The notes beneath the pieces are model-generated. The model searched no databases. It was not told the DNA's origin and saw nothing but the letters and a program-made list of their open reading frames with translations. A DNA stretch of 63,580 bases, filler included, from Octopus bimaculoides (Eukaryota), in NCBI RefSeq assembly GCF_001194135.2. It is 5 parts of 5 records of this genome, joined end to end, with 100 filler letters (N's around TTAATTAATTAA, not from the genome) between each part and the next. Parts side by side here need not be neighbours in the genome. Positions count along the whole stretch, not along the records: positions 32,460 to 59,960 come from NC_068983.1; 4 more parts are not named here. The stretch is one strand, 5' to 3'. How positions within the stretch are numbered: position 1 is the first letter of the stretch; each line of letters starts with the position of its first letter. The position numbers and the translations under genes were made by a program. Shown piece after piece: positions 32,806-54,837 of the stretch.

Positions 32806-32922
32806 TTGATCCTTGCAAAAATAAAATAAATCCATGCAAGAATGGAGGAAAATGTATCAACAAAGATTCCACCTTCATTTGTGAATGTACTGAGAATTAT
32901 TTTGGCCGATTTTGTGCTCAAG
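32806..32922 (+). CDS. Exon A of VWD-domain gene: EGF-like module (phase 1-1)
   Basis: TTCAG acceptor at 32801-32805, GTAAGT donor at 32923. 117 nt reads DPCKNKINPCKNGGKCINKDSTFICECTENYFGRFCAQ, a six-Cys EGF pattern (C..C.NGG.C...C.C...Y.G..C). Too short to appear in the ORF track. Confidence 0.9.
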
Positions 32923-33209
32923 GTAAGTGATAATTATCGTTTCTTATATTTAATCCATTATTATTCCAGCACTTAATAAGGCATTTACCTGGCACAATCA
33001 TTAAACCGTTAAACAAAATGCTTAGCGGCGATTTTCATTACGAATACGGACCGCGAAAGCGTGGCCCATCGATCCTTTCCGACTTTACCTTTCAGTATTT
33101 TGACGTCGATAAAATAAGTAATCGCTGAGAACTGAACTCGTGTAATCGACTAACCCACTTCCTAAAAATTTCAGGCCTTGACCCGATTGTAAAATGAATT
33201 ACAATTTAT

Positions 33210-33581
33210 GCTGGCACTCCGTCGCATACGACGTCGAGGGTTCCAGTTGATTCGATCAACAGAACTGGCTGCTCGTGAAATTAACGTGCAAGTGGCTGAG
33301 CACTCCACAGATACGTGTACCCTTAACGTAGTTCTCGGGGATATTCAGCGTGACAAGGCTCACTCTTTGAATTACAGGCACATCAGGAACAAGAAGAAAG
33401 AGTGAGAGAAAGTTGTGGTGAAAGAGTACAGCAGGGTTCGCCTCTATCCCCTGCCGGAGCCTCGTGGGGCTTTAGGTGTTTTCGCTCAATAAACACTCAC
33501 AACGCCCGGTCTGGGAATCGATACCGCGATCCTATGACCGTGAGTCCGCTGCCCTAACCACTGGGCCATTGCGCCTCCACG
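33210..33581 (-). mobile_element. SINE family C, full length, 12-bp TSD
   Basis: TSD ATTACAATTTAT at 33198-33209 and 33582-33593. It sits at the tail of a family A copy (about 33000-33195). Confidence 0.92.
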
Positions 33582-34815
33582 ATTACAATTTATACTCTTA
33601 ATGTATTCTGCGGTTTCGACATATATTGTATGTTCCCTTCAATGACTTTGTTCCGGTGGTGATGCTGGGCTTTGTATTTTTTTCGCAGCTCCCATGGTTA
33701 CCGAGATAATCTACTATGATAATACTCTTGTTTTTATGAATGAGGAAGGAAGGGACGATAGATGAATAAGGAAGGAAGGTGTGATGTCATACTTGGTTTG
33801 TGGGATGATGAAAATTGTACACTGAAAAATAAATCAAACAGTGTTTCAACTCTGTGTGAATATATATGTGTGTATGTAAAAGAGGGGTTTGTGAATGTGT
33901 ATATGTGTCTGTGTGTGTTTGCGTATGTGCGTGTGTGTGCGCGCGCAATGGAAGTGGGATGGTTCATCTTTGTTCGCTTAGTATTTGGGTTTATTTTTTG
34001 ATTTGGTTGAATCTTGGTTGGTTTTTTTTTTGTCGTTGATCAGTTATTTTTAGCGTTTTGACAGAAAAAAGTCATTCTAAAATTGTTTTTTAACGTAAGC
34101 GTGCCTAAATAAGTCGAATGCTTACACAGAGCAGGTTTTACAGCCACATCATCCAAATCAACCAGGTGAAACCGGGCTTAGCTGCTAGTATACATATAAT
34201 CTCTCCAATCTGAAAGCGGAAGCTGGATTTACGGTGACGACTATATGCATCCACTACTGGTTGCATATTCTTAACCTTCTATATACTGCAATTTCTAACG
34301 TTACAACTATCACGAAATTCCAAGCGCCCCAAAACGGCTGTTCAACTTGAAATAGCATGCCCTCTCCCCTTGATTCTCGGTATATTTTATATTCTTTGTG
34401 AAACTGTTGTGTAAAAATATAAATATATGCTTATACATGAATGTTCATCTGGATAGTATCACTTTTTGTTTCTTTCTCTATGTATCTCTATGTGCAATTG
34501 TATATATATGTATATTTTATATGTATCAAGCCCCCAAGTGTGTTTATTTGTTTATTTATATCATTATCTTTATATATTCATTAGTATTTGGCAGATGTAA
34601 CGGAGTGACACAAAGGTCGATAGTCTCATGTGTTAGTACTTATCAAGCCTTTGATAACACACGAAACTCTCGATCCTTGAGCCGCTCTGTTAATTCTTCT
34701 AAATATTAACAAAAATATGTATAGATGTTAAATGTTCATTTAATGTGGTTTTAGAGTCAAGTTTTGACTGCTATTTCCAGGGTGGTGGTATCTCTTAGAT
34801 ACCCTAAATTATAAT

Positions 34816-34895
<80 letters not shown>

Positions 34896-35720
34896 CACGA
34901 GGAGGTACACAAAAGTAACTGGAAACATTTTCCGTGGAACAAGCCCATTGGTAAATCTGGCTTTCGCCGCTTTTATGCAACCCTCAGGCATTCGTCCGTC
35001 GAATGAAGTCGTACTGCCAAGTGGTGCGACTTAGTTTTGCAGTACCTCTCTCCAGCTCTTCGAGTTTTGCGACAGCTGAAACGAAGGAACAGCGTGCTTC
35101 CGTGAAATTTTGTTTTCTGGTGAGGAAAACGGCGGCCGAAACATTTTGTCATGCTTCAAACATCTTACAAAGCCGCTGCCATGGGCAAAACACAAATTTC
35201 CGACCATTCCTAAAAGGTTTCCATGTTGTAGGAATGGTCACATGTCGCTTAAAAACCAACCTCGTTCAGCGCGGCCGTCCCATCCTCCCGAACAGATGAC
35301 TTCTCGAAAATTCATGAAATGACTGAGAGGACGAACTTCTTGATATGACTGATGTGTCGTAGAGCTCCTTTAAACGAAGTTTGAACGAGGAATTGCGAAT
35401 GAAAGGAGTTGCAGCAAAATATGTGCCTCGCTTGCTCACGGAAAATCGTAAACTGAAAGAACTGTCGGAAATTGATCTGGATATTTTTTCGAAGGTCATC
35501 ACTGGTGCTACTGAATTTGTAGATGTGGGAGAGGTGAAAAAGAAAAACGTCGGAGACGCTTATAGCATCACTTTGCAAGAGTTCCAGCACTGCTTCGAAC
35601 ACTGGAAAACGCGCCTGGACCAATTCATAGCTCCAAATGGAGAACAATTTGAAGGTGATACAAGTGTAAACATGTAAAACTAAGTGAATAAAATAATATT
35701 GCATAATTCCGGCTTCTTCG
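34896..35720 (+). mobile_element. Internally deleted mariner element
   Basis: ETKEQRASVKFCFLVRKTAAETF, LNEELRMKGVAAKYVPRLLT, KVITGATE, and C-terminus FEHWKTRLDQFIAPNGEQFEGD. ACGAG/CTTCGTA ends. Confidence 0.85.
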
Positions 35721-52548: not shown

Positions 52549-52758
52549 GCCGGCGAGCTGGCAGAAATGTTAGCACGCCGGGCAAAATGCTTTTGGTATT
52601 TCGTCTGTCTTTACGTTCTGAGTTCAAATTCCGCCGAGGTCGACTCTGCCTTTCATTCTTTCGGGATCTATAAATTAAGTACCAGTTGTGTTTTGAGGTC
52701 GATCTAATCGGCTGGCCCCTTCCCCCAAAATTTCGGGATCTTGTGCTTAGAGCAGAAA
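52549..52758 (+). mobile_element. SINE family A copy with 16-bp TSD
   Basis: AATTTGTTTACTTCAT on both flanks. Confidence 0.85.
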
Positions 52759-53125
52759 CGAATTTGTTTACTTCATTTTTGACATAACTAGTAAAATACA
52801 GCAATGATGTTATTTGTTTATAATTCGTTGTCTTTCTTTTAAGGAGTTAGCCTAACCAAAAAAGAAGAGGGAGAAGAAATTATTAAATAAAAGAAGTTAG
52901 GATTCAAAACCCAATAATCATGTACTTGAAAAGTATGAATATAGTTAGACATTAAGCCAAATATGGATATTGTCAAATCAACTGTAGGTTGCCGGGAGAA
53001 GTTAAAAGATACAGTTGGGTATTTTCGTTAGCAACACAAGGAAATTACAAATTTTGTTATTATTTAACTTCTAAAACTAAGATGTTGAGAGATCTGTGAT
53101 AGTGAAGAATTATTAACTGTATATA

Positions 53126-54399
53126 TTAGTTTGTTCGGAAAATAATGGTCGATTTTAGAAACAATTTTATTCTGGAAAAAATAATAGAAATGATTTGATT
53201 AGTGAAATTATGAGCCGTGAACATCTATACATCTCTGCCGTTGATCAACGAGATTATTTACACCTCGATGATAAAAACTTGTTGGCTTTGATGCTAAGAA
53301 ATCTTTGAAAACTGATTCCACCTTTGGTTTGGACCTGAAAGTTTTATCACTTAAAAACGTGTTTAAATTCTTAAAATGGTAGTCAGTGGGTGAAAGATCA
53401 GGAGAAGATGGAGGATATGGTAAAGTCTCGTATCCCAAGTCTGTGAGCTTCTGCAGTGCAATTCTTGCAACATGGGACTTTGCAGTATCGTGGAGCAGAA
53501 TTGGGCCACGCCGATTCACCAATACAGGTCTCATTTTTGGCAAGTGGGCATTCACTTCTGCGAGTTGGTTGCAGTAGACTTCTGCTTTAAAGCTATGATT
53601 GGCTTTCAAAAATCTGTAATGGACAACACCGATTCCAGACCACCAGACAGTCACCATAATCTTTTGCTGATGCAACTTTGTCTTTGGGAAATGTTTGGGG
53701 GACTCATCACGATCAAGCCATTGTCCGACCTGATTGTTTACAGTTATCATAAAGGATCCAGTTTTCATCACAAATGACTATTCGGTCAAGAACCGGATCA
53801 TTGGTGTTTCGCAGAAAGAGCATCGAGCACACTTCAAAACTCCGAACATTCTGATTTTCATTGAGTTCATGCGGTACCCATTTATCGAGCTTTTTCACCT
53901 TACCAATCTTCTGTAAATTGCGAGAGAGCGTTACAATACCGATATCAAGTGCCTGAGGCATTTCTCTGACACTTTGACGTTAGTTTTGTTCAGCAATTGC
54001 TTTCAATTGTTCACTGTCAAGACTGCATGACCGTCCTCTATCTTCTTCATCATCAAGGTTCTCATCACCACTACGTAATTTCTGAAACCACTTTCGTAGT
54101 GTGCGATCACTTGTGGACCCTTCTCTCCATGCTCTGTTGATATTGTCAGCAGTTTGGGAGGTATTGTGCCTAAGCATGAACTCCTGCAAGAAACGTAAAC
54201 GAAGGTCCATTTTGTCATGTTCATAATTAAGGGCGCCTATGCTTCAAGAATGTTTTCTGCCTGAAATAAGTAGAAAATTATTAAAGAGCATACATCAATT
54301 GCTAAGTTTGTCGAAATTTACCTAAGATATAATTAAAATACTATGATAAAATTGCGTTTCAAAAGACAACACCGGCCATTATTTTTAGAAAAAAACAAG
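53126..54399 (-). mobile_element. mariner (DD34D) element, near full length, frameshifted
   Basis: WFQKLRSGDENLDDE, KKLDKWVPHELNE, RIVICDENWILYDN, LLHDTAKSH, YPPSSPDLSPTDYH. Imperfect TIRs (AAAATAATGGTCG / CCGGCCATTATTTTT). Confidence 0.92.
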
Positions 54400-54603
54400 T
54401 AGAAAGAAATACCAATCTTTAAATTTTCTTATGAATTCGCGTTGAAGACATGTATACTATGCTACATAGGATGTGAACTGAAAGTATTCAAACCATATTT
54501 TTAAACCGTGGTAAGAATATAAGAATATTTTCTTTTATTATGTTTTTAATAAAATACGGTATTTTACTATTATTCTTTCCTATTTTATATATTTTCTTCA
54601 CAG

Positions 54604-54837
54604 GTCGATGGGGTCATTTTATTCAAGTATGGAACGCGGAATTGAAAGCCGTTCCTTGGGCTTCATATTCAGTGGATTATAGCCACTGCAGTCAACTGTG
54701 TTATTTTAATAAATTTTGCAAGGCATTTAGCAGCGATCATACTCGTAGAATATGTAACATATATAATGTTGATGCGAGTGGCAATTTTACTTTGGCCTTT
54801 GCCGACTGCAGTTCAAAATACTATTATCAGCGAAGCA
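54604..54837 (+). CDS. Exon G of VWD-domain gene: PAN/apple-like domain (phase 1-1)
   Basis: TTCACAG acceptor, GTAAGT donor at 54838. Reads GRWGHFIQVWNAELK...HCSQLCYFNKFCKAFSSDHTRRICNIYN...YYYQRS, i.e. C-x3-C-x5-C-x2-F-x7-C-x2-Y PAN spacing. Confidence 0.8.

Follow-up and report, generated by a model that had tools for sequence, protein, structure and literature searches.

Internal coding exons of an octopod "zonadhesin-like" gene that join an EGF, a D assembly and a PAN domain

Background

The D assembly, a unit made of vWD, C8, TIL and E modules (PMC11796319), occurs in FCGBP, in mammalian zonadhesin (ZAN), and in VWF and the gel-forming mucins MUC2, MUC5AC and MUC5B. In Octopus bimaculoides (RefSeq assembly GCF_001194135.2) we have studied one such assembly, preceded by an EGF and followed by a PAN/apple domain, that is encoded by a chain of seven exons. 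The chain is located in the part that comes from NC_068983.1 (positions 32460-59960) of the window, that is, the whole stretch of DNA analysed, with 63,580 nucleotides including filler. In the reading that we favour, with a probability of roughly 0.6, these are coding exons 8-14 of a "zonadhesin-like" gene that would encode an extracellular mosaic, with a conserved scaffold of D assemblies and fast-changing VWA and PAN modules for binding.

Among proteins with a solved structure the best relative is FCGBP (8rde_A, E 1.7e-141), six assemblies of which each align with residues ~35-430 of the octopus chain. In FCGBP 7-13 assemblies follow one another and VWA, EGF and PAN are absent, whereas the octopus gene has two assemblies, split by a VWA and the EGF, with two PAN domains at the end. 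The FCGBP cleavage motif GDPH (PMC8267560) is shared with the upstream assembly of the octopus gene and absent from the one encoded in 32460-59960. ZAN resembles the octopus gene in its D assemblies and in its rapid evolution between species (PMC9275260), but of its MAM domains, mucin-like region and transmembrane segment with a short tail no counterpart was seen in the Pfam families listed for the octopus protein, in its sequence, and in the exon chain or the O. sinensis ortholog, respectively, and ZAN has neither PAN nor VWA. VWF and the gel-forming mucins are homologous in their D assemblies (E 1e-33 to 1e-39); the octopus protein is much smaller, lacks the CGLC motif in the assembly described here and has no proline-, threonine- and serine-rich (PTS) region, VWC or cystine knot listed.

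Elsewhere, PAN/apple domains are binding modules for proteins or glycans. Several of the proteins that carry them (HGF, plasminogen, plasma kallikrein, TgMIC4 and Sarcocystis antigen L2) match a profile made from the two PAN domains of the octopus family, PAN1 and PAN2 (E 2.5e-5 to 3e-3), and have the C-x3-C ... C ... C core spacing in common with them, at a low sequence similarity. As far as our searches reached, PAN and a D assembly are not combined in any protein that has been solved or described, and in the literature no paper was found on a VWD-PAN architecture.

The seven exons and the annotated gene

The stretch 32460-59960 has a G+C content of 37% and contains seven N runs. A bacterial-style list of its open reading frames (ORFs) shows fragments alone, as expected of intron-rich animal DNA, and an earlier note on this DNA had described the protein as largely invisible to such a track. 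Among the stop-free segments of the + strand there are seven cysteine-rich stretches, and AG/GT boundaries join them into a single chain of 1533 nt (511 codons, 0 stops, 41 Cys) with six N-x-S/T sequons (NVS, NAT, NST, NTT, NNT and NFT). Each exon is preceded by a polypyrimidine tract plus AG and followed by GT, and the phases are, in order, 1-1, 1-0, 0-2, 2-1, 1-0, 0-1 and 1-1. About 7% of random codons would be stops at the base composition of the stretch, so that an open chain of 511 codons is far beyond chance. The exons, phases and stop-free length given in the earlier note, together with its count of at least six sequons of these same types, were reproduced exactly when the chain was rebuilt from the sequence, and the junctions are those of an annotated model.

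Actually, 32460-59960 is identical at 27501 of 27501 positions, N runs included, to chromosome CM046603.1 of O. bimaculoides (GCA_001194135.2); in the stretch of this chromosome used for comparison (L003) coordinates equal those of the window plus 3544. The chain of 510 amino acids (aa) corresponds exactly to residues 671-1180 of the annotated protein "zonadhesin-like [Octopus bimaculoides]" with 1269 aa (P0176). The junctions of this model were solved on the genome with one solution each, and those within the stretch fall on the coordinates of the chain. Since the chain is contained without change in an annotated protein and shares every junction with the annotated model, it has to be considered real. 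Its exons are consecutive internal coding exons, numbered 8-14, of a model with at least 15; the 1269-aa coding sequence was placed on the genome as 15 stretches, the first and second of which are separated by about ten unplaced residues. An ortholog is found in O. sinensis (XP_029633305.1, P0029, also "zonadhesin-like", 1006 aa), with identical exon joins and ~77% identity over the seven exons; the 5' end of this model is truncated by an assembly gap.

The order of domains in the 1269-aa model is VWD(GDPH)-C8-TIL-E-VWA-EGF-VWD-C8-TIL-E-PAN-PAN, and assembly gaps adjoin both ends of 32460-59960. The VWA exon (L003 32483-33046, window-equivalent 28938-29501) lies outside the stretch, and PAN2 and the stop codon are found in the last exon, at window-equivalent 61367-61645, past a gap of 1254 N; a search for PAN2 within 32460-59960 was negative. 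The earlier note had taken the seven exons for a self-contained protein in which an EGF at the N-terminus and a PAN at the C-terminus enclose just one VWD-C8-TIL assembly. The exons and domains are real and nothing else in the stretch is coding, but exon 1 (32806-32922) starts in phase 1 without an ATG, exon 7 (54604-54837) ends in phase 1 without a stop and the stretch is bounded by assembly gaps. Furthermore, the annotated models of two species continue upstream into a second assembly and the VWA (VWD-C8-TIL-E-VWA) and downstream into PAN2 and the stop. As a description of the whole protein this proposal is refuted by the models that run beyond both ends, and we consider it extremely improbable. 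The architecture looked novel because the visible part lies between two assembly gaps of a larger annotated gene. Nor is the gene without annotation: NCBI models of O. bimaculoides and O. sinensis already carry the public annotation "zonadhesin-like", which is automatic and reflects the similarity of the D assemblies only.

Domains of the segment

The segment consists of an EGF, one complete D assembly (VWD-C8-TIL-E, without GDPH) and the leading member of a C-terminal pair of PAN/apple domains. Exon 1 (32806..32922, on the + strand like the other six), which is exon 8 of the gene and covers residues ~670-709 of the 1269 aa, encodes a Notch-type EGF. It scores 34.6 bits in Pfam (cut-off 21.5), its PDB matches are Notch1 EGF repeats (E ~1e-7) and its boundaries are the same in the annotated model, O. 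vulgaris and O. sinensis. The VWD is divided between exon 2 (35890..36134; N-terminal half, Pfam profile 1-72) and exon 3 (38229..38527; C-terminal half including the motif GICGDCNG, profile 64-155). In the whole chain it reaches 90.4 bits against a cut-off of 22.9, with the profile unbroken from 1 to 155 over the junction of the two exons. The autocleavage motif, GDPHY in FCGBP, is replaced by NYGLFYY in the VWD of exon 2; GDPH is kept in the upstream D assembly of the same gene, outside the stretch. Exon 4 (42953..43221) encodes the C8 and the first Cys of the TIL module. The C8 was recognised from the exon peptide (49.7 bits, cut-off 23.7) and is unlisted in the whole-chain Pfam scan.

Exon 5 (47769..47959) encodes a TIL-like module of ten Cys. 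It aligns with the TIL of the FCGBP D assemblies, with that of paralog P0003 (E 3.9e-6) and with that of the upstream assembly of the gene, unit A (E 3.6e-7); the paralog and unit-A TILs that align in this way score 28.6-29.5 bits in Pfam TIL. Exon 6 (50827..51004, 7 Cys) is the E module of the assembly, as the FCGBP assemblies align through query residues ~418-432. Its C-terminal half is EGF-like, with an EGF_3 score of 17.9-22.1 bits that stays under the cut-off of 28.5, and P0003 has a weak TILa match in Pfam. The unit of the chain is VWD-C8-TIL-E, and therefore what the earlier note had called a second EGF belongs to the D assembly; the rest of the domain content that it proposed (EGF, VWD, C8, TIL and PAN) holds, although Pfam itself gives no TIL match.

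The first PAN/apple domain (PAN1, 5 Cys) is encoded by exon 7 (54604..54837), with 21.3 bits for Pfam PAN_1; the paralogs P0003 and P0107 reach 39.6 and 45.2 bits. In the PDB the PAN1-PAN2 family profile matches 2yil (E 2.5e-5), the HGF N domain (4e-4), TgMIC4 (4e-4) and plasminogen (3e-3), and also the kallikrein apple domains and Sarcocystis antigen L2. Run against proteins, the PAN1-PAN2 alignment profile gave no matches, its own members included, and this search is uninformative. Four core PAN Cys are invariant in the family alignment, and one of the five in PAN1 may pair outside the domain.

The chain, the O. sinensis ortholog P0029 and the relatives scanned contain no 19-residue window with the hydrophobicity of a membrane span. 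The chain has no CGLC motif, and the 1269-aa sequence shows no obvious mucin-like stretch rich in PTS. MAM is missing from the Pfam families listed for this protein, as are PTS, VWC and cystine knot from the Pfam lists. Hydrophobic N-termini resembling signal peptides were seen in paralogs only (P0002, P0004 and P0107). The earlier note had spoken of a secreted-type protein; the character of an extracellular Cys-rich glycoprotein is borne out, and secretion is not, with no signal peptide visible in the stretch or at the N-terminus of the model. In the VWA the metal ion-dependent adhesion site (MIDAS) looks degenerate: instead of D-x-S-x-S, O. bimaculoides has Q-A-S-A-I, and both O. vulgaris and O. 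sinensis have E-A-S-A-I.

A family of octopod paralogs

Relatives were sought by an exhaustive HMMER search with paralog P0003 as the query, which found 5433. The best 150 of these 5433 are mostly vertebrate FCGBP-like proteins and molluscan proteins named "zonadhesin-like" or "IgGFc-binding protein-like", and among them a local PAN model has matches in octopod proteins only. In a second search Pfam PAN_1 was found together with VWD only in proteins of Octopus and Argonauta. The test covers the relatives with the best scores, short of a complete census of architectures. Within that scope the combination is restricted to the octopods, in line with the lineage-specific protein proposed in the earlier note. 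A word-indexed search with the 510-aa chain gave 5 matches, among which neither the identical protein of O. bimaculoides nor the 77%-identical ortholog appeared, so that absence from its results is uninformative. Bivalve relatives named "zonadhesin-like" (P0179, P0190, P0191 and P0193-P0195) carry VWD-TIL together with Kringle, WSC, Gal_Lectin or SPRY, not PAN. Comparison of these sequences suggests a repeated swapping of modules on the D-assembly scaffold across molluscs.

The octopod relatives XP_036356795.1, CAI9719088-091 and, in Argonauta hians, GAB1606482.1 and GAB1605714.1 have VWA, EGF, VWD-C8-TIL-E, PAN-PAN and GICGDCNG in common with the gene. All the octopod models were generated automatically and are named inconsistently (zonadhesin-like, notch 2-like, mua-3-like, hypothetical); several of them contain errors. 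In the O. vulgaris model CAI9719091.1 (P0001; OX597816.1, L001 10001-48685) the EGF exon (L001 35343-35471) is out of frame and exon 2 is skipped; the model also ends early, its last 14 residues matching intron sequence of the window at 52846-52887. On one O. vulgaris chromosome four models are numbered in succession (CAI9719088-091), the ortholog being the fourth, and in O. sinensis P0003 lies tail to tail with the ortholog, directly downstream. The gene is a member of an octopod multi-paralog family that shuffles the same modules, with some members in tandem. The independent paralog models P0049, P0042 and P0188 repeat the succession VWA, EGF, D assembly, PAN-PAN, and a permuted order (signal peptide, PAN-PAN, EGF-like, D assembly, VWA) is found in Argonauta P0107 and O. 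sinensis P0173. Well-known modules (VWA, EGF, VWD-C8-TIL-E and PAN) have in this way been recombined by octopods into a small family, in a combination that is restricted to their lineage.

The annotated model could also be a fusion of two genes, one encoding VWD-C8-TIL-E-VWA and another that starts shortly before the EGF exon and encodes EGF-VWD-C8-TIL-E-PAN-PAN. The paralogous region of O. sinensis is indeed annotated as two models, P0004 (signal peptide, then VWD) and P0003 (EGF-like, EGF, D assembly, PAN-PAN), the same region being a single model of 2245 aa in O. vulgaris, and module exons of phase 1-1 join in frame whether they are truly spliced or not. However, the NCBI models of O. bimaculoides and of O. 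sinensis, separate from each other, make an identical join from VWA to EGF, and the succession of VWA, EGF and D assembly is repeated in the three independent paralog models. Besides, there is no ATG upstream of exon 1 in its open frame, within the mere 346 bases of the stretch that lie upstream. A fusion appears to us unlikely, and a single gene running from the upstream VWD to PAN2 is preferred.

Divergence between species

Over the seven exons O. bimaculoides and O. vulgaris have 77% protein identity and differ by one in-frame indel of 3 bp, and the O. vulgaris locus keeps the open frame, 14 of 14 splice sites and 41 of 41 Cys. Frames are open and splice sites intact in three species, and 79 of 81 Cys are kept. 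The ratio of nonsynonymous to synonymous divergence (dN/dS) between O. bimaculoides and O. vulgaris varies widely along the protein. It is 0.36 in the C-terminal half of the VWD, 0.43 in TIL, 0.51 in C8, 0.89 in the EGF, 0.97 in the N-terminal half of the VWD and 1.19 in the E module, and rises to 3.56 in PAN1 (dN 0.24, dS 0.067), the fastest part of the stretch. The VWA, outside the stretch, has 58% identity and a dN/dS of ~2.5 in the same comparison. Taken together, the VWD, C8 and TIL cores of the whole gene have a proportion of nonsynonymous differences (pN) of 0.072 versus 0.166 for synonymous ones (pS; p=2.9e-8), indicating purifying selection. For VWA plus PAN1, pN is 0.222 versus a pS of 0.092 (p=7.6e-5), and it also exceeds the intron divergence of 0.124 (p=4.5e-12). 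Between O. vulgaris and O. sinensis the seven exons have 13 nonsynonymous and 0 synonymous codon differences, 12 of the 13 located in TIL, E or PAN1 and 7 at sites where all three species differ. These patterns suggest diversifying selection on the presumed binding modules, with the scaffold constrained.

High dN/dS could instead reflect neutral drift in a decaying tandem duplicate, under relaxed constraint and bound to become a pseudogene. A whole-gene dN/dS of 0.83-1.0, the presence of several close paralogs, some of them adjoining, the loss of one PAN1 Cys in O. sinensis and a 20-nt indel difference in the tail C-terminal of PAN2 would all fit such a decay. Open frames and intact splice sites in three species do not fit it, nor does the retention of nearly all Cys, the constraint on the VWD, C8 and TIL cores or the excess of pN over both pS and intron divergence in VWA and PAN1, which drift alone does not produce. 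A pseudogene is improbable because the scaffold is constrained while the presumed binding modules change fast without loss of Cys, and we give decay even less credit than a fusion.

Several observations weigh against the reading as a constrained D scaffold with fast-changing binding modules. Exon 5 has no match to Pfam TIL, even with the leading Cys added and at E<=1, and exon 7 alone stays 0.1 bits below the PAN_1 cut-off of 21.4. AlphaFold2, run on paralog P0003 with an alignment of nine rows, gave a low-confidence model (mean predicted local distance difference test, pLDDT, 55; predicted template modelling score, pTM, 0.29), in the moderately confident part of which the PAN regions have a strand-helix-strand pattern. 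The N-terminus of the 1269-aa model is unlike a signal peptide, its 5' end being interrupted by a 4.9-kb assembly gap at L003 8110-12964. As to selection, PAN1 by itself is marginal (Fisher p=0.046), the whole-gene dN/dS of ~0.83 alone would also fit relaxed constraint, and all these figures come from counting methods applied pairwise to three close species. In O. sinensis PAN1 carries C465F (exon at L002 42998-43228), with TTT for the TGT conserved in O. bimaculoides and O. vulgaris, which may reflect a genuine loss or a fault in the assembly. Finally, neither the ortholog nor the neighbouring paralogs appear in the examined portions of two supplements on the skin-mucus proteome of O. vulgaris.

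Possible function

Fast-changing binding modules on a conserved scaffold are typical of gamete-recognition and immune-surface proteins. Under the favoured reading the product would be an extracellular, N-glycosylated and disulfide-locked adhesive or matrix glycoprotein. Its two D assemblies would serve as a rigid scaffold that is conserved and may support oligomerisation, as happens in FCGBP, mucins and VWF, and the VWA and PAN modules would act as the ligand-binding ends. With every cysteine kept, these ends would outpace neutral DNA between species, which would point to a partner that itself changes quickly, either the coat of a gamete or glycans of microbes or mucus. A reproductive and a mucosal or immune role seem to fit the sequence about equally well. 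A published proteome of the Argonauta eggcase makes no mention of VWD or PAN, and none of the literature checked ties the gene to a tissue.

The gene might be a true functional analogue of mammalian zonadhesin, acting in gamete recognition (at the sperm, the egg coat or the oviducal gland) with its fast domains setting species specificity. Its rapid, site-recurrent nonsynonymous change resembles what has been reported for mammalian Zan (PMC9275260), and in O. maya transcripts labelled zonadhesin are up in the oviducal gland at fertilisation and have been measured in testis (PMC8976471, PMC6522055). The published O. maya primers for quantitative PCR, however, do not match the locus, and these transcripts cannot be tied to the gene. 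No MAM is listed and neither a PTS-rich nor a membrane-span-like stretch was detected (the latter in the chain and the O. sinensis ortholog), the name of the gene expresses D-assembly similarity only, and immune or mucosal proteins have the same evolutionary signature. On balance this analogy is possible rather than likely. Equally tentative is a broader proposal, in which an octopod-specific family of D assemblies with PAN and VWA, its binding modules under recurrent positive selection, might supply a species-specific recognition molecule, active in gamete recognition or at the host-microbe surface. Such a molecule would match zonadhesin in function but would have arisen independently out of other modules. 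The gene can be taken as a reasonable candidate for octopus reproductive isolation or mucosal defence, as a lead only.

Assembly gaps and intron content

The five gaps within the exon chain are all intronic, at 37365-37427 (intron 2), 39333-39876 (intron 3), 44387-45061 and 47278-47366 (both in intron 4) and 48998-49526 (intron 5), and no exon abuts any of them. Nothing is missing across 37365-37427, because the VWD profile is continuous over exons 2 and 3. In the orthologous stretch of O. vulgaris (L001), which is ungapped there, the seven exons keep their order, and nothing else that resembles an exon matches between them. No exon is hidden by the five gaps. The gap at 54868-55112, just beyond the end of the chain, corresponds to ~0 bases at the O. 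vulgaris equivalent.

Two segments with one gap each, 39207-42351 and 48219-49756, are without counterpart in O. vulgaris, where their flanks are contiguous at L001 43053/43054 and 46731/46734. ORFs at 40906-41560, within the first of them, have a faint resemblance to DDE_3 (E 0.11). In the ORF translations every N run is flanked by microsatellites, appearing as YIYI (TA-rich), THTH/CVCV (CA/TG) or N/I (AAT/ATT), for example at 37300-37364, 39300-39332, 44340-44386, 47240-47277, 48940-48997 and 54850-54867. These repeats probably explain the breaks of the short-read assembly at the N runs.

The intron between exons 6 and 7 contains the remnant of a mariner/Mos1-type transposase (53208-54210, - strand), spread over several ORFs, with 39.9 bits for HTH_48 and 76.1 bits for Transposase_1. 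The block 52597-54866 has 87.6% identity to the same intron of O. vulgaris, and since it is present in both species the insertion must be older than the split of O. bimaculoides and O. vulgaris. Broken retroelement-like ORFs are found on the + strand at 56600-59100, with a weak GIY-YIG match at 58733-59083 (E 0.098), which suggests a Penelope-like element; within this block 56703-57796 matches O. vulgaris L001 52861-53988. No tRNA genes or Rfam families were found in 32460-59960, and the intron repeats gave no tRNA-like match. These repeats, of ~160-370 bp and in both orientations, are located at 33280-33580, 43856-44014, 45936-46302, 48057-48219, 49649-49808, 50123-50429 and 52547-52713, and match many sites of the O. 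vulgaris locus at 72-90% identity.

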